DNA from: Podarcis tiliguerta | Lineage: Eukaryota | Direction: 5' to 3' (one strand) | Length of the DNA stretch: 64,000 nt | Assembly (NCBI GenBank): GCA_965153285.1 | Contig: OZ229114.1 | In this document: piece by piece, positions 971 to 64,000 of the stretch | How positions within the stretch are numbered: position 1 is the first letter of the stretch | How the letters are laid out: every line of letters begins with the position of its first letter | The notes under the pieces: model-generated | Told to the model about the DNA's origin: nothing | The model's database searches: none | What the model saw: the letters and a program-made list of their open reading frames with translations, nothing else | Position numbers and translations under genes: made by a program

Positions 971-1605
971 GTAATTGTGATGCAGTATACAGGGTATCTC
1001 ATTACTGATAGAAGTCTGATGTGCAATCTGAGCCCTTCCCTCCTCTAAGGCTTGTTTAGCTTGGAATTCATTTATGTCAGCCAGGCCAATGATGAAGAAC
1101 TTGTTTCAGATTCTGTTGGACTTCAGCTCCCATCAGCTCCATTCAGCATGGTCAATAGCCAGGTTGGTTGTTGTTAAATTGATTACCCACCCTTCATCAT
1201 AGGTCCCTGGGTGGGTTTCAGTTATTTAAAATTCAGAATTAAAAACAGTTGAAACATATTACATTTCCAGGAATAGGTTCAATATAAGTTTTAAGCCCAT
1301 CAACACCTGGAGGACCAAAGGTTCCCTCTTTGTAGGCTTCTGCATTAGGCCTTGATGATGTCAGATGGAGAGTGGAGAGACCATGAAATATCAGGACATT
1401 GAAATATCAGGACATTATTTGATAAGGTAAAGTGCCAAAAGACTTGAATCCTGGGATCAACATCCATATAATAGGGGCACTGTTGTTAGAGATGGGAGGG
1501 AAGAACAGTTTCTTTAGATTTGGATGTTGCTTCCAGTGGTATGCAGTTTCTTCCATTTGGTACTGCAGTCTAGTTCAGTGTTTTTGATGCCAAGATGTTG
1601 TCAAG

Positions 1606-1780
1606 TGATATTGCTCAGCACATGCTTTGCGTTCTAAAGGTCCCTTGTTCAACCCTTGACATCTCCAGATAAAAGTGGGAATGATTGTTTTCTGAAGAAA
1701 GTCTGAGTGCTGTTGTTGGTCAGTGTACAGTTGTGAGCTTGATGGTCTGACTTTGTCTAAGGCAGCTCCTATGTTCCTAG
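1606..1780 (+). mobile_element. Degenerate tRNA-derived SINE (Squam2-like)
   Basis: Resembles the copy at 46483-46660 (head with gttcaacccttgacatctccag; tail ggtctgact...aaggcagctcctatgttcc). Confidence 0.5.
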
Positions 1781-2682
1781 TTGTGACCGCATAAATGGCT
1801 AGTCTTGTGACATGGTGGAATGCAGGGCAAGTGAAGGGAGGGGCACAGAATGATGGGAAAGGGCAAGTGGGAAAAAGAAGTTGGTGACAGTTGGACCTGA
1901 AGAGAGAACTGAGGAAGGTGGAAGAAAATGAATAGCCACCAGAAATTGAGGAATTATAAAGACCTGGTCTAAGAAATACATGTGTTATTGAGTTATATCA
2001 ATTCTAAGGGATTTTCAGGTCTCAAAAATCAATGAGAAAATGACCTCCATGAAGAACTTGAGTAAAACAATGGGATTCCCTGTGGCAATGTATGCCTCTC
2101 AGGTCTACCTCAGCTGATATCCATGAAAACCCAAATGGAATTCCTACACAGATGGTTTTATATCAAAGTCTGATTAGCTAAGGTAACAGGGTGAGACAAC
2201 GGCTTTGCACTGGAGAAGCTGCTGGCATAAGTGTACATACTGGCAGTTGTGATGAACTGCCCTCCAGGGAGCAGGTTGTTAAGTGAGCCAAATTATGTTT
2301 GTGAGTATAAATTCAAATATTGAATTTATTTATTTTATTAAAATTTATATACTGGCCGATTGTAGGGGAAAAAACTCCAAAGAATGGCTTTATGCTAGTT
2401 GCTGACCATTAGGCAGAAATGGAAAAATGCTAAGGGTGTTGCCTTGGAAGGGTAGTAGGCAAAGTTGTGGTTTGCGGCAGCCATGTTAACTCATCATATT
2501 CATGTTATGGGGGTGAATCCCAACCAGAATCTGACTTTACAATTTGACATGGTTTTATTTTCTATATGAGCAATAAAACAAGAGCTGCAAAGTATAAGAG
2601 GAGGTGGAGGATTTCATAACAAACAAAAAACTACAAATATGTTTTTGCACAAGTTTTCTGCTGTTGCTGTATCCTGTTATTA

Positions 2683-4260
2683 CCGTATTTTTCGCCCTAT
2701 AGGACGCACTTTTTCCCCTCCAAAAATGAAGGGGAAATCTGGGTGCGTCCTATGGGGCGAATGCAGGCTTCGCAGACCTCTCCGCAAACAGCAGGAGCGC
2801 TCCCGCTGCTGGCGGAGAGGTGCCTGCATGCTGAAGCCTGCGCACTGAGCTCAGCGCGTCCAGGCTTCGCGGACCTCTCCGCTAGCAGCGGGAGCGCTCC
2901 CGCTGCTGGCGGAGAGGTGCCTGCATGCTGAAGCCTGCGCGCGCTGAGCTCAGCGCGTCCAGGCTTCGCGGACCTCTCCGCTAGCAGCGGGAGCGCTCCC
3001 GCTGCTGGCGGAGGGGTGCCTGCATGCTGAAGCCTGCGCGCGCTGAGCTCAGCGCGTCCAGGCTTCGCGGACCTCTCCGCTAGCAGCGGGAGCGCTCCCG
3101 CTGCTGGCGGAGAGGTGCCTGCATGCTGAAGCCTGCGCGCGCTGAGCTCAGCGCGTCCAGGCTTCGCGGACCTCTCCGCTAGCAGCGGGAGCGCTCCCGC
3201 TGCTGGCGGAGGGGTGCCTGCATGCTGAAACCTGCGCGCGCTGAGCTCAGCGCGTCCAGGCTTCGCGGACCTCTCCGCTAGCAGCGGGAGCGCTCCCGCT
3301 GCTGGCGGAGGGGTGCCTGCATGCTGAAACCTGCGCGCGCTGAGCTCAGCGCGTCCAGGCTTCGCGGACCTCTCCGCTAGCAGCGGGAGCGCTCCCGCTG
3401 CTGGCGGAGAGGTGCCTGCATGCTGAAGCCTGCGCGCGCTGAGCTCAGCGCGTCCAGGCTTCGCGGACCTCTCCGCTAGCAGCGGGAGCGCTCCCGCTGC
3501 TGGCGGAGAGGTGCCTGCATGCTGAAGCCTGCGCGCGCTGAGCTCAGCGCGTCCAGGCTTCGCGGACCTCTCCGCTAGCAGCGGGAGCGCTCCCGCTGCT
3601 GGCGGAGAGGTGCCTGCATGCTGAAGCCTGCGCGCGCTGAGCTCAGCGCGTCCAGGCTTCGCGGACCTCTCCGCTAGCAGCGGGAGCGCTCCCGCTGCTG
3701 GCGGAGAGGTGCCTGCATGCTGAAGCCTGCGCGCGCTGAGCTCAGCGCGTCCAGGCTTCGCGGACCTCTCCGCTAGCAGCGGGAGCGCTCCCGCTGCTGG
3801 CGGAGAGGTGCCTGCATGCTGAAGCCTGCGCGCGCTGAGCTCAGCGCGTCCAGGCTTCGCGGACCTCTCCGCTAGCAGCGGGAGCGCTCCCGCTGCTGGC
3901 GGAGAGGTGCCTGCATGCTGAAGCCTGCGCGCGCTGAGCTCAGCGCGTCCAGGCTTCGCGGACCTCTCCGCCAGCAGCGGGAGCGCTCCCGCTGCTGGCG
4001 GAGAGTTGCCTGCATGCTGAAGCCTGCGCGCGCTGAGCTCAGCATGTCCAGGCTTCGCGGACCTCTCCGCTAGCAGCGGGAGCCAGCACTGGGCTCCCAC
4101 GGCTTGCAGAGAGCTGCCTGTTTGGGGGTTGGGGTCGGGGGAAGCTCGGGCTTCCCCAACCCCGCGCCTGGGGGGGAAATAATTTTTTTCCTTTATTTCC
4201 CCCCCAAAAAAACTAGGTGCGCCTTATGGGACGGTGCGTCCTATAGGGCGAAAAATACGG
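2683..4260. mobile_element. Non-autonomous Tc1/mariner-superfamily (Tc2/pogo-type) DNA transposon carrying a tandem array
   Basis: Perfect 27-bp TIRs CCGTATTTTTCGCCCTATAGGACGCAC (2683-2709 / 4234-4260); TA on both flanks (2681-2682, 4261-4262); subterminal partial TIR copies at ~2742-2761 and ~4216-4230. Confidence 0.9.
2764..4083. repeat. 99-bp GC/CpG-rich palindromic minisatellite, ~13.4 units
   Basis: Units start at 2764 (degenerate), 2861, 2960, 3059 ... 3950 and 4049 (partial); each holds the palindromes AGCAGCGGGAGCGCTCCCGCTGCT and CGCGCTGAGCTCAGCGCG. Confidence 0.97.
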
Positions 4261-4641
4261 TACTTTTTATAGGATTGTATATTGGCCTTTTATCACTCCT
4301 ATTGTATGTTGCCCTGATACTTTCCCCTAAAAATCATTTAAACAAAATAAGCAAAGGGACTGACTGCAAGCGACAAACAACTGATACCATAGTGAGTAAG
4401 TAACTAATGGTGGCTTAACACTGGCTTATTTGTGTGATGATGGGATGGTTGTGTTTGTTCATCATCATTAGAAATGTTAATTATGTAGCTGCTATTAATT
4501 GATTGCTCTTAATGTTATTTGAGATAAATATTGTTCATTTTAACTGCATTCAAAGGTAACTGCCAATGGGCATCAGCAAGAAGGGAAAGAAATGACTAGC
4601 TTTCTGCACATGGGACTGACTGAGCCTTTATTTCCTTACAG

Positions 4642-4703
4642 GAGTTGCCATTAAAATACCAATTGTTTGTGTAGTACTCGAGGGTGGCCCTGGGACTCTT
4701 GAT
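4642..4703 (+). CDS. TRPM2: TRPM2 exon ~7
   Basis: ccttacag acceptor; (G)VAIKIPIVCVVLEGGPGTLD; gtaagt donor; phase 1 to 0. Confidence 0.95.
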
Positions 4704-5393
4704 GTAAGTACTCTACAGGCATCAGGGCAACTAATTATGGGAAAAGAAGCAAAGTGTAGGAGAATTCAGTAATTGTTAACACCTGGATATTTCTCTCTCA
4801 GAGCACAGTGTGCCTCAATCACACAGTAACTACTTTTGTGGTGTCTTTGTAACATTGCAGAAACACATCTAGTTGTAACTACAAAGCAGGGACTGGCTGT
4901 ATGGGCACAGAGAGTTCTGACTTGTACATTTCAAGCCCTTTTAACTCACACATAGCAAAGAGATTCTGCATAGCAGAAGATATAAGAGTATGCCTTAGCT
5001 GTAAACAATGAGAATCGCTCTAAAACAGTTGAAACCTGCTCAACATGCTGATCGGCAGAATGAAGTGGCAGAGCAAGGTGGAATTCTGAACTACATCACT
5101 TAAGACAGCAGATGGGAGAATCATGTTTTTAAACTTTCCTTCACATAAATTCTCTATACTACTCCTTAATCCCAGATATGCTCCATAGATTACTACAGCA
5201 TACAAGGAGCATATATATTCCGAAACATGATCTCCCACCTGTGCTGTGTGATATGATACAGTTCAGAATTCCAAGATGTCATTCTACAAGCTCAATTCAT
5301 AAATTGATTCTGAACTTAGTGGCAATATCAAAGTGATGTCCATAAGACAGCACCAGCTCAAATGCAGTCATGCTCCTGTATTCTGTTCTACAG

Positions 5394-5594
5394 ACCATCT
5401 ACAATGCAATTACCAATGGCACCCCCTGTGTGGTTGTGGAAGGCTCAGGACGGGTGGCTGATGTCATTGCTCAAGTGGCTAATCTGCCCATCTCCCAAAT
5501 AAGCATCTCCCTCATTCAGAAAAAACTGAGCATATTCTTCAAAGAGAGCTATGAGCAGTTTACTGAGAGTAAGATTGTGGAATGGACCAAAAAG
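5394..5594 (+). CDS. TRPM2: TRPM2 exon ~8
   Basis: ctacag acceptor; TIYNAITNGTPCVVVEGSGRVADVIAQVANLP...KIVEWTKK; gtaagg donor. Confidence 0.96.
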
Positions 5595-5695
5595 GTAAGG
5601 CAAATGGTCTCTGTGCAGCTTTTACTGGGTTTTGTTGGTGAAGTTGCAGTCATGAGCTAGGACCTTCAGTCTTACCTTTTCTTTGGCATTTGCAG

Positions 5696-5798: not shown

Positions 5799-7049
5799 GT
5801 GAGAAGTGCAGTGGGTGTTGCAGATGAGGTACAGAGATCAGTAAGTGAAACTGTTTCTTTTAGGACGTTCCCTTGTGTTGGAATGTGGTATTGCTTCAGA
5901 ATGCAGCACAAGACAGTACTGTACTGTAGAACCTTTTGTGTGTCATAATTTAGACTTCACTTACCTTGAGGGATTTGTTTCCATGGAAGTGGAGGCACAG
6001 CAAGGACACCTGATCACCATATGCAGTGAGGAAAATACTGTTGGAGAGAGAGGCTTGGAAGAGAGATTCCTATTCTCCAGTAGCAGAGTTAAGCACAATG
6101 GTGATTGCTCGAAGAACTTTAAAACTTGGTTAGGTTTGCATCTACCCTCGTCCACCTTTAAAGAATGTTCCCCATTAAAATACTTAGGCTAGGAAAAAAA
6201 TCACAGACACTTAGCTTGGAAATAAGTGATTTTTTTTTACTTAAGAAATTCCCAGAAGTTACAGCAAACAAATCTCCATCATCTGGCAATAAAACAAAGA
6301 TGAAAAGGTTCCAAACAACTTTAAAAAGAAAAGTACCATACTTTGTTTCCTTACAAAAGGAATCATGCAGTCTGTGGGTTTGCAAAGTTGCAGGTTTTAA
6401 AAACTCACCTTTAAAGCGATTCAGTTCACTTACAGGATCAGCTGAGTGGGGAGCCAAAGCTACATGGCTCCTTTTTTGCTTGTTCTAGGAAGCATTAAGG
6501 GGGGAAAGGAGGGGGGGGGCAGAGGCTGCTGCCAGCCTGCTAAGCCACATTCACTGGCAACCTGAGCTCAGGTTAACCCTTTCACACATGGAAGTGTGAG
6601 TCAGTAACTGTACAGTACAACAAATACTACCTGGTATCATAACCCGAAACTGTGACATTGCATGAAGTGGGATGTTGAGCAATACCTAGGAGATACAAAG
6701 TCATTTGACACAAACACATTTTATTTGATGTGTTGAGTTTGATTGTTAACCTTACAGCTCATAGGAGGTAACAGCAATTGAAAAAAACCCAGCTCAAATA
6801 CTTAATAAAACATGCAAGCCACATAATGGAAACATTAAAATGACTCCATACTTGCTTTGCTCCAGCCATTAAATGTCAACATAAACAAGAAAGTCTCTTT
6901 GGAAAATGCTCAGAGTAACCAAGCTCTAGGCAGTAATGTTGGGTATGTTACATGTGCTTAAATCCACAGGATATTTAAAGAAGCAGTTGGGGGCCAAAAG
7001 GGTATGCTAGTGATACGTTTATGTTGCAAGGTACCTAGGCCTCCCAATG

Positions 7050-7275
7050 CAGTGGTACCTCAGGTTACATACGCTTCAGGTTACAGACTCCGCTAACCCA
7101 GAAATAGTGCTTCAGGTTAAGAACTTTGCTTCAGGATGAGAACAGAAATCATGCTCTGGCGGCGCGGCGGCAGCAGGAGGCCCCATTAGCTAAAGTGGTG
7201 CTTCAGGTTAAGAACAGTTTCAGGTTAAGTATGGACCTCCAGAACGAATTAAGTACTTAACTTGAGGTACCACTG
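7050..7275 (+). mobile_element. Tigger/pogo-type MITE (family A, copy 1)
   Basis: TIR CAGTGGTACCTCA / TGAGGTACCACTG, TA at 3' flank; near-identical copies at 29859 and 62149. Confidence 0.85.
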
Positions 7276-7398
7276 TATGTTTCTCTTGCCATTCATTCCC
7301 CTTCAAGTTCTCAATGTGCATGAGTAAGAGACAGCCAGTAAAGGTCAGCCCTTTGCAACCTAGTTTCAGCCATGTTTTTGTTTATTCCTCTATTGCAG

Positions 7399-12276: not shown

Positions 12277-13175
12277 GTGAGTCTGGGCTGGTAGGCATCT
12301 GATCAGGGCACGTTAAGTCCTCCAACTTACTGGATGCTTTCCTGTGATACCTACTCTGTCTCCCCTGCTCATACTACAGACCACCATAGCATTATCTCAT
12401 GAAAGGCTAGATCCCTCAGTACAACTACACAGATCCTATAGATTCAGTTCATTCTGAAACATGGGCGTTTTGTATGTAAATGCTCTGTAAGCAATGATCC
12501 CAACAACAGGTGAACACTGGGATCAAGAAGCTACACTACAACTATGCCTGTTCCCTAAGTTGCTTTTAGAGCTCCCCCCCCCCCCAACACATATCCTACT
12601 TCCTGAGCTCTTTGACTCTGGTAAGCCACACCCATAGTTGTAGTCTCTGTTTCTATGACTAGAAATGCAGTGTCATACTGGTACTATTGCTTATTATGTC
12701 CCTGCAATGCACATGATGCTCACCTGTGACCTGTGATAAGGCTGAGAGGCACAGGGCTTGTCCACACTTCCTCTCACCCCACCGCTTTTCCCTCAGGGAA
12801 ACCTGTTTTTACTGCTGAATCAGAGCAAATGTCAGTTGGGGTTTTCTGTGGACTAACGTTTGCTTTCATTCAGTGGTAAAAGCAGAGATAGTGGCATGGC
12901 TGATGGAAAACCCCTCAGTCCTGTGCTTTCTAGGACCACAGTGGCTGGCCAAGGTCACCCAGAGAGCTTCATGCCTGAGTAGGGATTGCAAACCAGGCTC
13001 TCCAGTCCTGTGGCTTTCTCAGTCTTGGCTGTTAAGTTTGTTACGTAGCAGCTCACTAATCCTCAGGCTAAGCTACCTCACAGGCTTGTTTGAGGTGGAA
13101 GTGCTTTTCAGAGAACCTGTGGGAGAGAAATACAAAAGAAATAATAAGAATCTCTAATCCCGGTTACTCTTCTAG

Positions 13176-13321
13176 GTGTCTTCACTGAATGTTACCGGAA
13201 GGATGAAGAAAGAGCCCAAAAACTGTTGATCCGCATATCTGATGCTTGGGGGAAGACCACCTGCTTACAACTAGCCCTGGAGGCCAAAAATATGAAATTT
13301 GTGTCTTATGGGGGCATCCAG
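13176..13321 (+). CDS. TRPM2: TRPM2 exon ~14
   Basis: ttctag acceptor; (G)VFTECYRKDEERAQKLLIRISDAWGKTTCLQLALEAKNMKFVSYGGIQ; gttgga donor. Confidence 0.95.
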
Positions 13322-14478
13322 GTTGGAGTGCTTACTGACAAAACTTTGTTGCTTAAATAGTAATGTTAATCTGATTTACAGCTAACTGTGCAATATGTAG
13401 CCCCAACAGAATGGATTAACTGAAATACTTAAAAGAGAGACCACTGTTGGGGAAACATTACCCAATTTTCACCCTTTAATTAAAGTAACCATCTCTGTTG
13501 CTACTACTGCCTGAGGAACTTCAGACCTCACTATGCATGGCCATTGCTGCTGATGCTCCATTGACAGAAAAGGTCACCATTCTCTAAGTACAGTTCCATT
13601 TGGCTACTGGGAAACTTTGGCTGCCCCTTTAAGAATTCCTGTGTTGTAGTTCCTGCTTCTCCATTGAGGGTGAACACTCAGGGTTTGAACTGCAGAAATA
13701 CTGCAGAAACTCTACAGCAAAGAGCAGGCCTTTTAGAACAAGTAATGGTGGAAAATTATAAAGCAATACTACCAGGACTACATTAGTTCATATCTAAAAA
13801 AATAAGAGAAATATCATCTAGGTTTTCAGAAACAAATGAGTGAGTGAGTGAACATTAGAAAAGCCCCACTATATGAGACCAAACGCCTACTAGTCCTGCA
13901 TTCTGTTTTCAGAGTGGGTAACCAAATGCACCAGGAAGAATGGTGTTGAATGTAGAGGGGGGGGGGAGCTATTGTGGAAACACCATTCATTCTAGGTTGC
14001 AGATGTGGAATCAGTGTGTGATTTGGGGGCACAGCAGTTAAGTCAAGGCCTACAGTTACTGTGTGGTCTAAATTTTCCCGATAGGTGGGTGTCCTTGTAC
14101 TGCCAGTGATTCTGACTCAGCTAACAACACAGCTCATGCTTGTGTGCATCCTTCTGGGTCCTGAGATCCACACATGATGGCCACTTTCATTTTGCCAGAG
14201 CAAGTGACAAGCCCTATCACCCTCCTTTGTTACCTTTGCCAAGTTCAAACCACACGAATTTCTGGCATTCTTTTTACCACAGGCACAGTCATGCTATTTA
14301 GCATTTGTCCTCTATTCTTTGGCATAAAGCCCACAGACTTTCAGCAGAGAATGTTGCCTGCTGTCCTCCCTGCAAATTGATCCCCAAGTATGTCCCATCT
14401 TTTGCCTTCTGTTCTTGACCTTACCCAGGACATGGGAAACAGGCCTCAACCTTCATTGCACTGTGTTCCTTTTTCTAG

Positions 14479-29858: not shown

Positions 29859-30090
29859 CAGTGGTACCTCGGGTTACATACGCTTCAGGTTGCATACGCT
29901 TCAGGTTACAGACTCCACTAACCCAGAAATAGTGCTTCAGGTTAAGAACTTTGCTTCAGGATAAGAACAGAAATCGTGCTCCAGCGGCGCGGTGGCCCAA
30001 TTGGCTAAAGTGGTGCTTCAGGTTAAGAACAGTTTCAGGTTAAGAATGGACCTCCAGAACTAATTAAGTACTTAACCTGAGGTACCACTG
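29859..30090 (+). mobile_element. Tigger/pogo-type MITE (family A, copy 2)
   Basis: TA-CAGTGGTACCTC...GAGGTACCACTG-TA; internal duplication of catacgcttcaggtt. Confidence 0.88.
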
Positions 30091-30839
30091 TATTTTAATC
30101 AGAATATTTGAAATTGAAATGCTTGCTGAGGTGACTTGGATGATGATGTGGTGCATTCTAGTGATAAGTGATACACATGGCTTTTATGAACTGACCAATT
30201 GTGTTGCAGGTAGCTCAGTTCTGGAACAAGACATGTCTGTGTTCTGCCCCCCCCCCCCCAAATCCTGGTTACACCTATGCCATAAGATGGGTTTAAGTGT
30301 GTGAACATACGAAGACTCTTGCAAAAAGCACTCTGAAGGCCTATCTAATACAACATCCTGGCCTCACGAAAGCCAACAAGTTGCCTATGGGAAGCTCAAA
30401 AGTATGACCAGAGTGCCAAAGGGCTCTCCTCCCTTGTAGATTTTAGGCAACAACATTTTAACACCTGTGACCAGTGAATAGTTCGGTAGTGTTGCAATGT
30501 TGAAAATGGACAAACAAAAGCAGTATACAAATACAATTTTGATACTGAATCAAATCTACAGCTTTCAAATCAAATCTACAGCTTTCAAATAGTGCAGTTT
30601 TGAAAATGACAACTGGTCTGGTATACTGCACACTGCATATTTTTAAGTGAGATCCAGAAATATTGTGTGATGTGGCAGCTATACAGCAAAGGGCCTCTGA
30701 ACAGGAGCCTACTGACCATACTGACCTCTCAGCCCATCTAAAAAGGCTTAACTGCAGTATACAGAATGAGAAGTCCTTCCAGGCCTCAGGCGCCAGACAG
30801 TTTCCATAAAGGCTTTTCCCTCTCAAAATTCCCTACACA

Positions 30840-44832: not shown

Positions 44833-45087
44833 GAGAGCCAGTGTGGTGTAGTGGTTGAGAGCAGTAGTCTTGTAATCTGGGGAACCGGGTTCGTGTCTCC
44901 GCTCCTCCACATGCAGCTGCTGGGTGACCTTGGGCCAGTCACACTTCTCTGAAGTCTCTCAGCCCCACTCACCTCACAGAGTGTTTGTTGTGGGGGAGGA
45001 AGGGAAAGGAGAATGTTAGCCGCTTTGAGACTCCTTAAAGGGAGTGAAAGGCGGGATATCAAATCCAAACTCTTCTTCTTCTTCTTT
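44833..45087 (+). mobile_element. tRNA-derived SINE (Squam3-like), copy 1
   Basis: A-box TGGTGTAGTGG, B-box GGTTCG, gctgggtgaccttgggccagtc core, (CTT)n tail; nearly identical to 61802-62058. Confidence 0.85.
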
Positions 45088-45284
45088 TAGGGGCAAGCAG
45101 TGCAGACATCATCCTTTCAGGCTGGACTTTGAACACTGATTTTGCCAGTAACTGAATGACAAACCACAATTGCTTGCATACCTGATTCTTCTCTCTCTTA
45201 ATAAAGGCTGAGGGTAGTGTGTGTAAGCCTGGGATGGGGAACTTGCTGCTTTCCAACTGGACTCCAACTGGACTCCTGTCAGCC

Positions 45285-45621
45285 CAGTGGCATAGCGTGG
45301 GTTGTCAGCACCCGGGGCAAGGCAAGTAATTTGCGCCCCCTAACCCGGGGCAAGGCAAGTAATTTGCGCCCCCCCCCCTGCTGCACTGTCCCTCCCCCAG
45401 ATAGTCCCTCGCTCTCTCTCCGCACCGCACGCCTGGCACCCTCCCCTCCACAGTGGGCAGTGACCCGGCGGCTCGGATCGGATTCGCACAGCCAGCACTG
45501 CAGTGAGAGAGAGTGAGTGAGCCAGGTAGGGGCAGAGAGCTGCGAGTGCGAGCGCCCCTCCCCCCCCGATGTTGCGCCCGGTGCGGCCGGCCCCCCCTGC
45601 ACCCCCCACGCTACGCCACTG
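45285..45621 (+). mobile_element. GC-rich hAT MITE (family C, copy 1)
   Basis: TIR CAGTGGCATAGCGTGGG / CCCACGCTACGCCACTG; TSD TGTCAGCC / TACCAGCC (6 of 8); internal 33-bp tandem duplication. Confidence 0.85.
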
Positions 45622-46660: not shown

Positions 46661-48562
46661 TTTATGAAGGAACGTAGCCAGAAAATATTGTGCCAAAGCT
46701 GAAAATCCATGTAGGTTCTTCAAAGTTCCTTGAGACTGGAACTTGACTGCATTCACACAGCAGTTTATTCCATTTCCCTAACTGTTAATTTGAGCTTTCA
46801 CGTGGCATTAAAAGCAAGCCCTTCTGGAAATCTACAGTGCAAGTATAGCACCCATCTCCATGTAATTTGCTTCCGGGGGGGGGGGGGGACCTGCTTGCAA
46901 ACAACATGGAAACAATCTATGAACTTGCTCTATATTCCTGGAAGTGGTTTTTTCATTGTGTGGAAGTTCAAATATAATGCAGAAATTAACAATTAGGGTA
47001 ATGGGGAAATGGAACAAACTGCTGTATGGATGCAGATTTAAGAGTCCCATAGGCAGCTTGCTTGCCAGAAAAATCCATGTGCATTTTTTATCCCAGTGAA
47101 GCATTTTCCAATAGCTTTCCATCATAAGGAATCATTCCTAAAGCATTATTCCATGAAGGAAAACAAGGGCCAGCTCCAGATTTTTGGAGCTCCAGGCAAG
47201 GAACTGTACCAGCCCCTCCTGTATCTTGCTGCTCCCCACTTCCCTGAGCCTCTGGCCCAAGCGCCGCCATTTTTGTGAGGCTCATCAGTGGTGACCTCAA
47301 TTGCCTCATGGGAAGAGGAAGGTGAGGCCAAAAGTGTCTCTCTCTGGGCCAGCGGGATGAGCACTGCAGAATGGCAAGACCAAGAACAGCTGTGACATCG
47401 CCATGGCAACCGGAATGCTCTCCACCACAGCTGCCATCTCCAGCTGGGAAGCTGGCCTGGTTGCCACGGTGACTGAGATGTGCCTCAGTAGTAACACAGG
47501 AGCAGGGGGACTTGTGGGAAGGAATTGCGCATGGCGAAGCATGGAGGCCCAAAGGGAGCAGGAGAGCCATGTGACTCCTGAGACCCCGGGCAGCAGGTGG
47601 GGAACAGGGAAGCAGCAACTCCCTTCATTTGAACTGAAGTGGCCAGAGGGTGAGCTCACCCTGACATCAGGATGGGCAGCATGCCCTGTCTCGCTACTTT
47701 ATTGGCTGCTTTAGACAACCTGCCCTTTTTTGCCTTCAAACACTTTAGCGAACTCATTCAGGCAACAGCTGCTGACTGGAGTGGCTCATAAGTCCCAGCA
47801 GATGGCTAGCTAAGCTCAGGGTGGGACAGAGAAAAACCCATTACATTCGAAGAAGTAAAAAATGCCAACTTTTCAATGTTGGAGACTTCAATTCCTATCA
47901 GCTCCAGCCATTATGGTAGTTACAGTCCAAAACATCTGGAGGGCATCAGGTTGCGGGGGAGGGGGAGGGGAGCTGAATTCAAGCATGATTTTATTTGCCA
48001 TTTACCCGTTCCCCAATGAACCTGATCTCTAATGTTACAGATTCCAACAGAACTTAAAAAACAACAACAGCTGTATAACTTTATATCACCAGTTAGCATA
48101 CTCAGTGATGCTGCTGATCAGCACTAAGGGAAAAATAAATCAAGGAAGGGTGAACCTACACTTTTATTTTGCAGTCCCATTAAAACAAATAACACAAAAG
48201 TTGGTATATGGTGACTCAAGACAACCTGTACTATGATGGGGCTACAGTCAATAGATTGCACAATGCACATCTATACTTATATCCCCCTAATCTGCAGTCA
48301 CATCTGCATTATGGTTTTCATTACCTGTGTGCAACGGACTTCAGTAGTGACATATATGAATGGAAGGGAAATCTTTGGCTATGCCATTTTGGTGGCAGTG
48401 GCAGCATTCAATGCAGCTTCATGCATACAGAACTATGTATAAAAACCAGCACACCCACCCTCCCTTTGCCTATATAGGGTATATCCACTGAGGTGTTCAG
48501 AGCAAAATACATTGCCCAAGCAATCAAAGAATTATATTGGTTTTCCCTACTCAATATCTTAC

Positions 48563-48792
48563 CAATATTGACTGGAAGAGCTGGAAGGCTCCACTGAGCC
48601 AAATGTAGATGTGAGAGTTGATTGTGGTGGATGTTCCATTAAATGTGTTGGCCACCACGAGGAAGGAATAAGGCCCAATGCTGAAAAATTCCCAGTCGTA
48701 GGCTCCCGAGGTAGGAATGGTCTGGTTGGTTTCAAAAAGGCCTGTCCTGGCATTCCACCTGTATATGACACTGTCTATATTGTGGTTATTCC
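48563..48792 (-). CDS. TSPEAR: TSPEAR exon ~9 (EAR)
   Basis: ccttag acceptor; (G)[76 protein letters not shown]; gtaaga donor. Confidence 0.95.
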
Positions 48793-49060
48793 CTAAGGAA
48801 GAAAAAAATGTCAGACGTGAAGGACTGACCTCAAGGTTTTTATCTGAAAAGGAGAGTCATGTGAGAGGGTTGTTGTTGACAAGCTGAAGGAAATGACTGT
48901 CTAGTTTTTGACCAGATAAAGAACCAAAAAGGGAGCTAATAATTCAATTCCCCTGAAAAGATTTCAAAAGACAATGGCATTTTTGCATGGGATGGAATGT
49001 ATAGCATCCCATAAATAAGCCTACATGGGGCTGGGGGTCATATGCTCCACATCCCCTCTG

Positions 49061-49140
49061 ATAATAATAATAATAATAATAATAAATTTTATTTATATCC
49101 CGCCCTCCCCAGCCGAAGCCGGGCTCAGGGCGGCTAACAA
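49061..49140 (-). mobile_element. Retroposon 3'-end fragment with (ATT)n tail
   Basis: (AAT)n run followed by tttatttatatcccgccct...gggctcagggcggctaaca, the reverse of an L2/SINE-type 3' end. Confidence 0.5.
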
Positions 49141-51134
49141 CAATCAAATAATCAAACAATCAAATAATCCAACATTCTAAAAACATTTCTTTATAAAAAT
49201 TAATTAAAATTAAATGTGAGCTTCTCCCTCCTCCATAATAAAAAATATAGTAATGACACCCCAAATAAGCTGCCTGAGGCCTGCCTAGTGGCAAGGCTGG
49301 ACTTGGAAGAGAGTAAGGCATTACATGAATGAGAAATAAAGAATTTGATCAGCTAAGCTTTAGATTTTAATCATAACCACTACCACCCTTTTTCTTTTTG
49401 CAAAAGCAATTGAGGGGCCCAGTACAAATAGGACTGATTTAATAGCATTTACTTCCATATTGTCCCTGTTTACTTCATACTAAGGCTGAAACTACCATAC
49501 ATGTTAATTTTTCTTCCCACACAACACATTCTAGTAAAACAGTTCTTTCAATGGACTATGTTAACAGACTCCACTGGGTGGCAGCATATGGCCATTTCAT
49601 GGGCACTCCAAATGATTTTGGATCCCCAAAAGCTTCCAGGAGGTTCCACTTTAGTTGGGAGGCCAGGCTTGCAAGCCATGCTAAGCCCAGGGAAATCATG
49701 TGAGTGCGCAGCCTCTGAGAGAGGTGGTTTTGGTTTCTGTGCTCCTTCCCAATTGTTCTGCTGCTGCACTGAGCTAAATGAAGCTCTAGTTGCCTTGATT
49801 CGTTGAAAAAACCCAAGCCTGTGGTTTTAGCTATGTTCAGGCTTTGGCTTTTTGGCTCATAGTTTGTGAAGTGCAAACCATACCAAGTGACAAACCATTC
49901 TGATGGTTTGGAGGAATGTTGCAGAATTTTAACCTAGATGCCTGAAATCTAAACTACCAGCCATGTTTTCAACCAAGGTTTGGCATACTGTTTGTGGGAA
50001 ACTAAGAATCAGTTGTTTTTCCTCAGGGGCTGGGCTGAGGACAAACACTCTAGCAGGGGACCCATTTCCCAGCTCAAAATACCTCACAAAGTTGCTATTC
50101 GTTACTGTGCAATTTTAGGCAGGGGGGACAAAAACCACCAGGGGATGATTTTCAGCAGGAAAACAACATAGGGGCAAATGGTTAAAAATAAATAAATGAC
50201 GACAACGACATCCTGCCATGTTGCAATCTCACTCTGGATTGAGGACCCCCAGGGTTGCTTTCATAAATCCAGGTTTTTAAAATGTCTCTCTTAACACTGC
50301 ATAGGCCCTGAGACACAAAGAAAGCATCCGTTTGTTGCTGGGGTCTAAATATGTATAACCACATACTAAACACAGTACAGATGCAAATATGAAAAAGCTG
50401 GTGGAAAATGAAGCAGACACCCACGGTTTAAAAATGGTTTTAGCCAATACAAATTATTAATTTAAAGAGGACACAGAGCTCTTGGAAGTGAATTGCTGAG
50501 CAGCATCTGAACCCTGGCAGGTGGGGGCGAAAGAGGAGTGCAATTCGTTATTTCCCTGTTATAGACCCTACAAGGGAAGGCTGCAGTCAGTTGGACTGCT
50601 GATCGCAATAGCTACAGTGACAGCAGCTTCATTGATCCCTTGCAGTATCTCTCTTGGCTGAAGAGTCACTTCTGGTGGAAGAGTCTCCTAAGAACACAAA
50701 CCTAGATGGATGAGACCAAGGATGCACCTAATCCAATATCCTGCTTTCCACAGTGGCCAACCAGATGCCTCCATGCAGTAGCTCTCCCTCGAGCAACAGT
50801 GGTTTAGTGGAGACTGGCAGACCTATCCCTATACACATTCATTTAATCCCCTTTGAAAGTCATCTAAGATACTTGCCCTCTGTGTTTTGCAAGCAGGGCA
50901 TAGACTAGATAAATAGATAGATAGAAAGATTAAATTAATTAAGGGGAGCTCATCACGGCATTTCCATGCCAAAAATGACACCTGTTGACTTGATGCATGC
51001 CACACAGCTGTTAAGAGGAACAGAACATATGTAAGGAAAGCAGGTGCAAGCCAGGTGGTTCTGGCTGTCCAATGGCAAAGGGAAGGGATTTTGCACATGC
51101 CAATTGGTGTCACTGTACATTGGCAACCAGAGAC

Positions 51135-51321
51135 CTTTTCTATGATTAGCCACTGCGAGGAAGGCCTCTCCATCAATGACGAATGCCTCCCAGTCTCGAG
51201 CACTGTATGTGTTGATCCTCTGGTACACAGTGAATTTCTCCTTTCTGTAGTTCCACTTGTAAATCACAGAAAACTCTTGACCCCTTTCATTTGCTTCAAA
51301 ATTTGCCACTGCAAGGAAAAT
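51135..51321 (-). CDS. TSPEAR: TSPEAR exon ~8 (EAR)
   Basis: tttcag acceptor; [62 protein letters not shown](G); weak gtctct donor; phase fits the next exon. Confidence 0.93.
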
Positions 51322-51410
51322 CTGAAAAACAAGAAGCTACAACAGCTCAGTCTCTCTTCTTACACAGAACTATCCATATATTCTGCGTGAAATCGTTACT
51401 GAGGTTACTG

Positions 51411-51636
51411 AGTTGTCCCACCCTCCATATTTTCCCAGTCTGGCCCCATCGGATGTCTTTCTTTTTCCAAAACTGAAATCTGCACTGAAAGGGCACAGAT
51501 TTTCCAACATTTCACTCATCCAAGCTGCTGTGACGGTGGAACTGAAAGCAGTACGAAAAGAGGACTTTTCCAGAAGTTCTACAAACGTTGTCAATGGTGC
51601 ATTGTATCAGAGGGGGCCTACTTTGAAGGCCTGTAA
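51411..51636 (+). mobile_element. Mariner transposase C-terminal remnant
   Basis: HPPYFPSLAPSDVFLFPKLKSALKGHRF matches the mariner HPPYSPDLAPSD motif; after a frameshift it reads ...CQWCIVSEGAYFEGL then stop. Confidence 0.88.
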
Positions 51637-51971
51637 GCACAACAGGTTCTTTTCCAGAGAGGAAAAACTCTCAAAATGCGAAAATATGCTATCCTTCCCC
51701 CCACCCCACCCCAGACCACACATACTTTATTTGGAATATTTATTGGGCACACTCCATGAAATGCTCTCAGAATTTCCTACAATAAAATAGTGAAACCGCT
51801 ACAGAAGCCATATTTCATAAATAGCAATAGAGCAAGACACAGCAGTGCAATGAAAGCCAGCTTTGAAAAGCTCTTGCACTTTGCCACCAAACATCTCTGG
51901 TATGAGATTCTTGGTCTGCTAAAGTCTTCTAGCACAGCCTGCTCCAAATCTCCAAATCTCTTCTTCTAGAG

Positions 51972-52357
51972 CAAATGTGGGGAACTTTTTCTGGCCAGAG
52001 GGCTGGATCTCTTCCCCACCCTGGCAGGCCAAAGTTGACAGGTGGGCAGCCCATCACATGACATCACATACTGATGTCATGTGATGTTTCCCTTTGAGTA
52101 TCGTGAAGGTTTGAAGAAGCACGGGGGGGGGGGGGCATTTGAAAGCCTTGATCAAGGCACATGCTGACCATTTATCAGCTGATGGGCGGGTAGGAGTGCA
52201 CTTTCAAACACAGCCCCCTCCATGCTTCAAACTGCAGAGTTCTGAAGGAAAAGCACAAGGGGGAGTTGAAATTGATGGGTGGATAGGAATACACCTTTCT
52301 CAATCAAAGGAATTCCTACCCTTGCTGGCCAAATGGTAAGGAGTTTCCCCCATCCCT
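51972..52357. mobile_element. Degenerate hAT (Charlie-type) MITE
   Basis: Termini caaatgtggggaact / agtttccccatccctg; 8-bp TSD TTCTAGAG / TTCTAGAT. Confidence 0.65.
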
Positions 52358-52542
52358 GTTCTAGATAAATAAGAATACCAGTATGGAGGTGTGGAGGAAT
52401 TATATCTATATCCATTTCAATCTATATCTGTATATTTATTTGTGTTTGAAGGGGGAAATGTGTTGTGACCTTTATCAAAGTGCCTTGATTTGTCATGGTG
52501 TTGTAAGCCTACATAGTAGTAGTTCTTGGGGACAGGTTATGA

Positions 52543-52548
<6 letters not shown>

Positions 52549-52578
<30 letters not shown>
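52549..52578. repeat. (GA)n microsatellite
   Basis: Directly visible. Confidence 0.95.
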
Positions 52579-52580
<2 letters not shown>

Positions 52581-52816
52581 ATCACCTTACAAATGTATTA
52601 GATGGGGCCTGGATCAGCTAAATTTAATCCGATCGGTCTGGATGACAGTAGATTCTTATTGGCTTAAGGTTCCAATTCACTTGGGAGTTGACTGTCAGAT
52701 GGGGGTTAATTGCCAGTTAAGGAACTGGTAAGGGAGGTGTGAGAAAAAGGCCAGAGAGAAAAGCTGATGGGAATAGTGGAGTATCCCGTAATACTGAAAA
52801 TTAACTTACAATTTAC

Positions 52817-53049
52817 CTTTTTTCCGATAGTAAAGAATTTCCAGGACTGGGCTTGGTAAGTGGGGATATTTTGGTATGCCACAAATTTCTCATCCGTCCA
52901 TTTGTAGATGGCTGACCCTGGAGGAGTGTACCGATTAGCAGTAGCTGCAAAGAGTCCCACGTCAGGGATGACAAAGACCTCTATGCCCATGGTTTCAGAA
53001 TTTGTAGCTAAACTCTGGTATTCTTCCAGATAGTCCAGTCTTTCTTCAA
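52817..53049 (-). CDS. TSPEAR: TSPEAR exon ~7 (EAR)
   Basis: tcatag acceptor; (V)[77 protein letters not shown]; gtaaat donor. Confidence 0.95.
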
Positions 53050-53310
53050 CTATGAAATCAAATGGCATTAATAAGGGGATTCTGTAGGCAGAATGATCCA
53101 GCAGAATTAGCATTCCTGAAATGATTTATCTTCTCCTCCCCTCCGCTTCTGTGACCCTCTTCCTTGGGCCTTCTATCTGCCCTGAATTTCCCTCTCATTC
53201 CTTCTGGTTTCCCTACCCCTGATCCTATTCAAACTTACCTTTCACATTTAGATCTAGCTTCTCTGCTCAGATGCCTATAAGCCAGTTTAAACATGGTGCC
53301 TGAGCCCCTC

Positions 53311-61801: not shown

Positions 61802-62058
61802 GTGAGCCGGTGTGGTGTAGTGGTTAAGAGCGGTAGTCTCGTAATCTGGAGAACCGGGTTCGCGTCTCCGCTCCTCCACATGCAGCTGCTGGGTGACCTT
61901 GGGCTAGTCACACTTCTTTGAAATCTCTCAGCCTCACTCACCTCACAGAGTGTTTGTTGTGGGGGAGGAAGGGAAAGGAGAATGTTAGCCGCTTTGAGAC
62001 TCCTTAAAGGGAGTGAAAGGCGGGATATCAAATCCAAACTCTTCTTCTCTTCTTCTTC
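61802..62058 (+). mobile_element. tRNA-derived SINE (Squam3-like), copy 2
   Basis: Near-identical to 44833-45087; (CTT)n tail. Confidence 0.85.
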
Positions 62059-62086: not shown

Positions 62087-62454
62087 CAAGCAACTCCCAA
62101 TTCACACAGGGGTTTCGTTCCAAGGCACCTTAAGTGAAATTGCATATACAGTGGTACCTCAGGTTAAGTACTTAATTCGTTCTGGAGGTCCGTTCTTAAC
62201 CTGAAACTGTTCTTAACTTGAAGCACCACTTTAGCTAATGGGGCCTCCTGCTGCCGCCGCGCCGCCAGAGCACGATTTCTGTTTTCATCCTGAAGCAAAG
62301 TTCTTAACCTGAGGTACTATTTCTGGGTTAGCGGAGTCTGTAACCTGAAGCGTATGTAACCCGAGGTACCACTGTATTTGAAAGACCATTGGAAAAGCCT
62401 GTGTGTAGGCAGAGATGTGCACCTATTGAGAGCATGTAAATGGGGAGTCGCCTG
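62087..62454. mobile_element. Older Tigger-like MITE hosting a nested family-A MITE
   Basis: TA flanks; degenerate TIR CAAGCAACTCCCAATTCACA vs reverse complement of TGTAAATGGGGAGTCGCCTG. Confidence 0.6.
62149..62374 (-). mobile_element. Tigger/pogo-type MITE (family A, copy 3, inverted)
   Basis: TA-CAGTGGTACCTC...GAGGTACCACTG-TA; reverse complement of 7050-7275. Confidence 0.88.
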
Positions 62455-62793
62455 TACTATATTTTTGTTTATAACGTTGTGCAAAATAGGGTCACAGTTA
62501 ATCTGCTGTTTCTACAATCCATTTGTGCCTTCAATCCTTCCGGGCGGCTATGACAGGCTAATTGCTCACATGACATTGCATCTTGTTGACCTAGTTGGTT
62601 ACCCACCCTATCTACAATCCCACTTTCATAGTCTGGAGGCCAGACTGGAGTACAGAGCACCATTAGGCAGCGGGTGGGGGCCCCAAATGTAGCCCTTTAG
62701 CCCCTGGGGTTCTCTGCAGGATGCTGGACTAGATGGGCCATTGGCCTGATCCAGCAGGCTTTTCTTACATTCACACACACCCTCCCATAGGCC

Positions 62794-63130
62794 CAGTGGC
62801 ATAGCGTGGGTTGTCAGCACCCGGGGCAAGGCAAGTAATTTGCGCCCCCTAACCCGGGGCAAGGCAAGTAATTTGCGCCCCCCCCCGCTGCACTGTCCCT
62901 CCCCCAGATAGTCCCTCGCTCTCTCTCCGCACCACACCGCACGCCTGGCACCCTCCCCTCCACAGTGGGCGGCGACCCGGCGGCTCGGATCGGATTCGCA
63001 CAGCCAGCACTGCAGTGAGAGAGTGAGTGAGCCAGGTAGGGGCAGAGAGCTGCGAGTGCGAGCGCGCACCCCCCAGATGTTGCGCCCAGTGCGGCCGGCC
63101 CCCCCCTGCACCCCCCACGCTATGCCACTG
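62794..63130 (+). mobile_element. GC-rich hAT MITE (family C, copy 2)
   Basis: Perfect 17-bp TIR CAGTGGCATAGCGTGGG; perfect 8-bp TSD CATAGGCC (62786-62793, 63131-63138). Confidence 0.92.
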
Positions 63131-63373
63131 CATAGGCCGCTCCCTCCTGTGATCATGCTTCTCTCTTGCTTTTCTGGAAGGTGGACGGAGGTGCATGTGT
63201 GCCTGTAGAACACCAGAGGCAGATTTTGGCCAAGACCTGATGAAAAGAGCTCCCACGTTTTGCACAAAGCCTTCAGACTTCCCAGTTCTGGGCAGTGCCA
63301 TTTTCCATGCAGCCCCAACCCAGGGATGGTGGTGGTGGCAAAATTACCCCTGAATTGTACGTGCTTCACGTAC

Positions 63374-63612
63374 ACATCTGTGGGGATGCTGCAGTCCACA
63401 GTGAGAGAGAAGGAGCCTTTAGTTACTGCCAGTACCAGTGTGTGCCACTGATTGTCTGCCAAAAATACGTCCCGGAAGGTGACCCGTGTCTGCCAGCCAT
63501 TGGAAAGCTCTCTGCTCCAGAAGATGAAGTGAATTTTATTCCTCGAATATCGGAGTCCAAGCAGCAGAGTGTCACTGTTTTCCTCCAAAACCGTAAAGAT
63601 GTACTCGTTTCT
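63374..63612 (-). CDS. TSPEAR: TSPEAR exon ~3 (laminin-G/TSPN)
   Basis: tttcag acceptor; RNEYIFTVLEENSDTLLLGLRYSRNKIHFIFWSRELSNGWQTRVTFRDVFLADNQWHTLVLAVTKGSFSLTVDCSIPTD(V), with LADxxWHxL LamG motif; gtacgt donor. Confidence 0.94.
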
Positions 63613-64000
63613 CTGAAAGGACAGTTAAAGGCTGTTAGTCGGAAAGCTTCCCCTGGCTCCTCCCATTTATCAACCTGACTTGTCAAAATATTTTGTAAAA
63701 AAGAAAAGAAAACCTTTAATCCCAAGCATCGGAGGAACAATAAGGTTCATAGAATAAATGTCCTCCAAAACTCATTTTTTTGAAAACACAGTTAAGCTTG
63801 TCAGCCTGAAATACATTATTTTCTTCTACCAGCATATGAATCACTAATTTAATTTTTTGAGCACTCTGGCCCCAGCTTCACAATACATTTAAAGCAGTAT
63901 CACACCACTTTTAACTGTCATGGCTTCCTTCCAAAGAATCCTGGGAAGTGTGGTTTGTTAAGAGTGCTGAGTGTTATTAGGACGACCCTATTTACCTCAG

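Follow-up and report, generated by a model that had tools for sequence, protein, structure and literature searches.

A MITE-like transposon carrying an array of near-palindromic 99-bp units in a TRPM2 intron

Within the 64,000 nucleotides of Podarcis tiliguerta DNA analyzed here (the window), a striking 1.3-kb, GC-rich palindromic block lies between two exons of TRPM2, raising the question of what such a block is, how it grew and whether it does anything for its host. Drawing on its ends, on contigs from public sequencing runs and on the variants among its repeats, we hold with considerable confidence that the block is the interior of a 1,578-bp non-autonomous, MITE-like cut-and-paste transposon, which inserted recently in the TRPM2 intron and whose array grew head to tail. 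The element probably has no host function, and it is ordinary selfish DNA, of a kind already known from frogs, clams and flies. Explaining the block in this way is mainly of value for annotation, and it also carries a caution, namely that such blocks should not be taken for RNA genes or CpG-island promoters.

The element and its empty site

Two open frames (733-1005 and 5346-5657), each searched singly, match TRPM2 chains on either side of the block (Table 1), with TRPM8 as the next best match (E 1e-13 for the upstream frame and 1e-7 for the downstream frame), and a TRPM2-like domain (PF25508, E 5.5e-21) lies farther along at 13148-13357. Judging from these protein matches, the host gene is TRPM2, read on the plus strand, with the element in the intron between the two exons. 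An earlier note on this DNA had specified intron 6 of TRPM2; the part of that placement borne out by the flanking frames is the TRPM2 intron.

Table 1. Coordinates of the element, its parts and the flanking exons in the window
Feature	Position	Strand	Basis
Upstream TRPM2 coding exon (predicted)	787-972 (approximate)	+	Residues 257-318 of chain 6mix_A, E 1.4e-31
Left TA target-site duplication copy	2681-2682	.	Sequence and empty-site joint
Left terminal inverted repeat, 27 bp	2683-2709	+	Exact match
Left chassis arm, itself a hairpin	2683-2763	+	Self reverse-complement match; other copies diverge after ~2770
99-bp unit array, 13.4 copies, head to tail	2764-4083	+	Tandem Repeats Finder, unit cutting
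Right chassis arm	4084-4233	+	Sequence; other copies start to match at 4123
Right terminal inverted repeat, 27 bp	4234-4260	-	Exact match
Right TA target-site duplication copy	4261-4262	.	Sequence and empty-site joint
Downstream TRPM2 coding exon (predicted)	5385-5590 (approximate)	+	TRPM2 chain residues 336-416, E 1.6e-32

The same note had identified a transposon by perfect 27-bp terminal inverted repeats (TIRs) and a flanking TA, and we found these where it had placed them, with both the TA duplication and the identity as a transposon backed by contigs of the empty site. In the whole 64-kb window the TIR 27-mer has exactly two occurrences, identical at 27 of 27 bases (0 mismatches), against a chance expectation of 0 matches in 100 shuffles. 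No further copy of it was present in the window when up to three mismatches were allowed, blastn found no further copy of either arm or of the 99-bp unit there, and a metagenome scan with the TIR returned 0 matches; the window itself is free of N letters. Between its outer limits (2683-4260) the element measures 1578 nt, and its two arms are rich in short symmetries. The left arm contains the inner TIR half a second time, inverted, at ~2742-2761, which makes the arm a hairpin; over 74 columns, positions 2691-2761 agree at 75.7% with their own reverse complement. In the right arm, what remains of a diverged unit half, with a short loop, lies at ~4084-4122, followed by two short palindromes (4138-4157, and 4169-4182 paired with 4193-4206) and, at ~4217-4233, by a degenerate copy of the inner TIR half in direct orientation.

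Among the public runs matched to positions 2100-4800, 20 of the 23 listed contain part of the stretch, none being on record as RNA, and the fraction of sampled words present was 0.67-0.81 in four runs of organism A vs 0.36-0.41 in six other species. We compared the contigs of four runs, all of them short-read contigs, with positions 1500-5500: X1 and X4, from different samples and studies of organism A (the same species), X5, from the sister species organism B, and X15, from another species. A 1,608-nt contig of X1 runs from 1500 to 2680 and continues from 4261 to 4520 with 0 differences, and a 1,567-nt contig of X4 takes the same course with ~1% differences. In both, the joint from 2680 to 4261 has 255 letters on each side and leaves out 1580 letters, equal to the 1578-nt element and one TA. 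The same joint appears in one contig of X5, whose flanks are ~3% different, with 37 letters on the shorter side. Because the filled allele has only TA(C) in common across the site, a contig that crosses it means that reads from an empty allele exist. These contigs show the boundaries of the element and its TA duplication, with the qualification that the joint is ambiguous by three letters (TAC), which formally leaves room for a duplication of 3 bp with unequal ends; they also show at least one chromosome without the insertion in each of the two organism A samples. Should X1 come from the assembled individual, its empty allele would signify heterozygosity there rather than a second individual. 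Another joint, from 1668 to 2680 with 20 letters on the shorter side, was set aside as a probable chance match.

The empty state is ancestral and not the product of excision, because it shows one TA without any footprint and is found in the sister species as well. The insertion is recent and still polymorphic in the species, and because it is polymorphic, the family to which it belongs is active or was very recently active. Recent activity is uncommon among amniote DNA transposons, and the notable feature of this locus is that the insertion still segregates. Polymorphic insertions of this family could be used as population markers, and its insertions could be used to test how well vertebrate chromosomes tolerate long near-perfect palindromes.

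The element combines a TA duplication, TIRs, no coding capacity and many copies at unrelated sites, as expected of Tc1/mariner MITEs, and its central core array lies between TIR-bearing flanks, as expected of tandem-repeat MITEs. Its use of TA is suggestive of integration as in Tc1/mariner-superfamily elements; the superfamily is assigned from the TA duplication and the TIRs alone because no autonomous partner or transposase was found, and the Tc2 group named in the earlier note is a candidate placement within it.

Family abundance and modular build

Contig pieces matching positions 1500-5500 number 10,041 in X1, 8,662 in X4, 18,965 in X5 and 570 in X15, almost all of them on the element ends. 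Summed word depth in X1, a quantity that does not give copy numbers, reaches 244,461 and 603,358 in the left-end bins and 303,445 at the right end, compared with 16.6 in the flanks. At position 2681, matches break off in loose ends in 112 contigs of X1, 99 of X4, 125 of X5 and 21 of X15, with an agreement of 0.35-0.38, and flanks that agree so little imply many different insertion sites. The family is thus very abundant in the lizard lineage. Array bins in X1 have summed depths of up to 124,610 and 131,575, from which it follows that the 99-bp unit is also present elsewhere in that genome; depth in the middle array bins is 0, which presumably reflects the placement at the array edges of pieces that match more than one unit.

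Copies of the family are not all built alike. Loose ends after 2770 occur in 13 contigs of X1 and 36 of X5, with an agreement of 0.85-0.87 on a different interior, and other contigs start to match only from 4123. These two breaks define ~2683-2770 and 4123-4260 as a family chassis, the interiors of which vary between copies, and at least one other "cassette" is carried on the same chassis. Single contigs of X5 run from the left arm into the right arm with 0 to ~2 units between them (2760 to 4094, 2785 to 3985 and 2994 to 4093, with sides of 28-36 letters), which may reflect a core copy number that varies between copies, although short-read contigs can collapse repeats. The copy in the TRPM2 intron is divisible into ~260 bp of chassis, in the form of two hairpin-rich, TIR-bearing arms, and a remainder given over to ~13 repeats of a 99-bp near-palindromic, CpG-rich core.

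The 99-bp unit and the growth of its array

Tandem Repeats Finder describes the array with a period of 99, 98% matches and 0% indels, and its figure of 13.4 copies is the one given in the earlier note. That note had also described two symmetry centres per unit, and palindrome search together with unit cutting located both in all units, at unit positions 35.0 and 84.5. One is the centre of a loopless 46-nt palindrome with one mismatched pair and the other that of a 38-nt palindrome that is 89% complementary, while longer arms spanning units are 71-78% complementary. In a periodic sequence, symmetry about one point entails symmetry about another half a period away, so the second centre is an automatic consequence of repeating a single near-palindromic unit and calls for no special mechanism. 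Aligned with its own reverse complement, the unit matches at 87 of 107 columns, leaving 4 substitutions and 16 gap columns; the two half-units are 4 substitutions apart, with 8 unmatched letters in each half.

Differences among the units are few and are arranged in an orderly way. Eight of the 12 full units match the consensus exactly, and six consecutive units (3356-3949) are identical. A single variant marks the unit at 2960, and the units at 3158 and 3257 have in common a two-variant haplotype made up of that variant and a second. Divergence is found at the edges: the diverged first unit measures 97 bp, four changes mark the last full unit (at 3950), and a diverged half-unit with a short loop lies beyond the last partial unit. 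A homogeneous centre with diverged edges is the usual picture in tandem arrays.

This arrangement bears on whether the assembly can be trusted here. No contig of the four short-read runs spans the array, and six identical consecutive units are hard to count with short reads, both of which would be expected if the length of the array, or the array as a whole, were an assembly artefact; yet the ordered, unit-specific variants and diverged edge units are what a resolved array contains, and contigs of all four runs include array sequence. We consider an artefact very unlikely.

Direct, head-to-tail amplification is the reading that the units themselves favour, and it departs from the proposal in the earlier note that growth inside the element proceeded by repeated duplication, in inverted orientation, of a ~50-bp monomer through fold-back or template switching. 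All units are in direct orientation: the forward consensus fits 13 of 13 units (92-99 of 99 positions) better than the reverse one does (84-87 of 107 columns), and the asymmetries between half-units recur identically, in the same orientation, in every one of them. The variants that neighboring units share, in columns 55 and 73 of the unit, have no mirror on the partner arm. Asymmetries repeated in one orientation and unmirrored variants together indicate that the most recent duplications, a dozen at the least, were direct and had a period of 99, and the recurrence of the asymmetries further indicates that the halves diverged before amplification and were then copied together head to tail. Inverted copying would have yielded perfect palindromes or flipped markers, whereas the 4 substitutions and 16 gap columns that separate the halves keep the same orientation throughout. 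Self-complementarity at 87 of 107 columns and the presence of two symmetry centres are what gives the fold-back proposal its appeal, although the second centre follows from periodicity once there is one, and errors of replication driven by stem-loops have been put forward for arrays in MITEs (Hikosaka and Kawahara 2004, cited in PMC3879986 and PMC12628747). Fold-back copying could have made the first inverted dimer; it is disfavoured for the most recent duplications, a dozen or so, and as an account of how the array as a whole grew we regard it as very unlikely.

For direct amplification, replication slippage and unequal exchange are both candidate routes, and the data fit the two alike; hairpins that stalled replication would probably have helped. 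Because the insertion is young and the 99-bp unit is abundant elsewhere in the genome, we infer that most of the array was already present when the copy now in the TRPM2 intron transposed.

Elements of this general design have been described, contrary to the suggestion that this one belonged to no described kind of family: MITEs with tandem arrays are in print, among them a Tc1/mariner MITE of Xenopus. We found no literature on this lizard element family or on its TIR 27-mer, and Repbase, Dfam or the supplementary repeat libraries of lizard genomes may contain the family. MITE-derived tandem repeats listed in a review include Xstir on Xmix in Xenopus laevis and miDNA4 in X. tropicalis (PMC9659126). 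The latter, a Tc1/mariner MITE with internal satellite DNA (Scalvenzi and Pollet 2014, via PMC9659126) that contains either a single monomer or an array whose copy number varies (PMC12628747), resembles the lizard element in being a vertebrate Tc1/mariner-type MITE with a satellite-like repeat inside (PMC9659126; PMC12628747). The two differ in host and sequence, the comparison being one of descriptions only; the capture of a repeat that already existed is the origin favoured by the authors for miDNA4, and the review passages concerned do not call that repeat palindromic. In Xstir/Xmix, tandem repeats likewise derive from internal MITE sequence (PMC9659126), and a stem-and-loop replication model has been put forward for such MITE arrays (Hikosaka and Kawahara 2004, via PMC3879986 and PMC12628747). 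As described there, that model involves two neighboring elements and predicts long satellite arrays, whereas the lizard array sits within one TIR-bounded, still mobile element.

A cassette-like arrangement is found in bivalve MITEs of the DTC84/pearl type, where flanks with short inverted repeats surround a tandem core as a "cassette" and each core repeat has a palindrome that has been suggested as a hotspot for length change (PMC3879986). Features described for DTC84/pearl but not shared by the lizard element are an AA duplication, at most ~five repeats of 160 bp, an adjacent tetranucleotide microsatellite and perhaps a Helitron-like nature (PMC3879986). The lizard element has a TA duplication, 13 units of 99 bp and a unit that is palindromic as a whole, and Tandem Repeats Finder detected no microsatellite within 2683-4260; with TA in place of AA and no microsatellite, it is an analogue of pearl/DTC84 and not a member. 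In foldback elements the repeats are located within long inverted termini, and membership in that group was rejected as well, the TIRs being 27 bp long, the array central and all 13 units in one orientation. Tetris, a foldback element of Drosophila virilis, is similar in being a DNA transposon that is rich in internal repeats and seeds satellite DNA (PMC4079207).

Composition, predicted RNA structure and the rest of the window

The array has a G+C content of 71% and a CpG observed/expected ratio of 0.92, against 0.11-0.14 in the adjoining kilobase on each side and 0.29 in the window, a level that fits a very young, or unmethylated, insertion. It also folds tightly. Three units folded as RNA reach -267.9 kcal/mol (z -16.1) and one unit folded as DNA reaches -43.2 kcal/mol (z -6.7), with 0 of 200 shuffles equalling either value; the very stable RNA hairpins anticipated in the earlier note are therefore predicted at a level far beyond chance. 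Side effects in carriers are likely, in the form of a CpG-island-like block and a hairpin-forming intronic RNA. A broader proposal, which we put forward only as a long shot, is that a mobile MITE family delivers CpG-island-like palindromic minisatellites into genes, so that carrier and empty alleles differ in methylation, in replication stability, or in small RNAs or edited dsRNA. If this were true, the locus would offer a natural presence/absence experiment on the effect of such a cassette on its host gene.

That the array is a working hairpin-RNA cassette borne on a transposon, whether as a source of miRNA, siRNA or piRNA or as an ADAR substrate, is highly improbable. The extreme stability of the predicted RNA structure and the location of the element in the intron of an expressed gene, on its sense strand, speak for it, as do MITE ends in contigs of X15, a run guessed to be RNA. 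In that run, however, one contig lies on the downstream TRPM2 exon and many lie on the MITE ends, with almost none on the array, where depth is 0 to 51 vs up to 5,420 on the ends. Rfam miRNA precursor models (MIR1437, MIR1151, mir-503 and others) gave at best 78.1 bits vs a gathering score of 168, and none of the 55 matches reached its gathering score; they fall on both strands and to unrelated plant and animal miRNA models, as for any long hairpin, and we discounted all 55 as generic hairpin matches. Because the insertion is polymorphic, and it is moreover absent from the sister species, the element has no conserved role at the TRPM2 locus. A coding reading was likewise rejected, the 508-aa minus-strand open frame through the array being a by-product of a stop-free 33-codon unit; no Pfam family scored above its cut-off in that frame (SAP has 18.3 bits against a cut-off of 23.9).

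Elsewhere in the window, several further features were recorded. Just downstream of the insertion, positions 4794-4931 are matched in X1 by two contigs, one with 0 differences (depth 12.0) and the other with 8 differences (depth 22.2), and are either heterozygous or a repeat of low copy number. EPTP/EAR repeats (PF03736, E 1e-12 to 7e-19) are encoded by open frames at 48554-53125 and 62629-63624 on the minus strand, accompanied by a weak laminin G match below the cut-off. By their domain content these frames look like a TSPEAR-like gene, tail to tail with TRPM2, which TSPEAR also adjoins in mammals. Two repeat pairs, 45282-45621 with 62791-63130 and 44835-45086 with 61804-62054, are 94.5-95.6% alike and are another young repeat family, the first pair containing in both copies the same perfect tandem duplication (33 bp x 1.9, at 45310-45373 and 62819-62882). 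Finally, three copies of a repeat of ~220-230 bp, 88-96% alike and in both orientations, are found at 7046-7281, 29885-30096 and 62146-62378.
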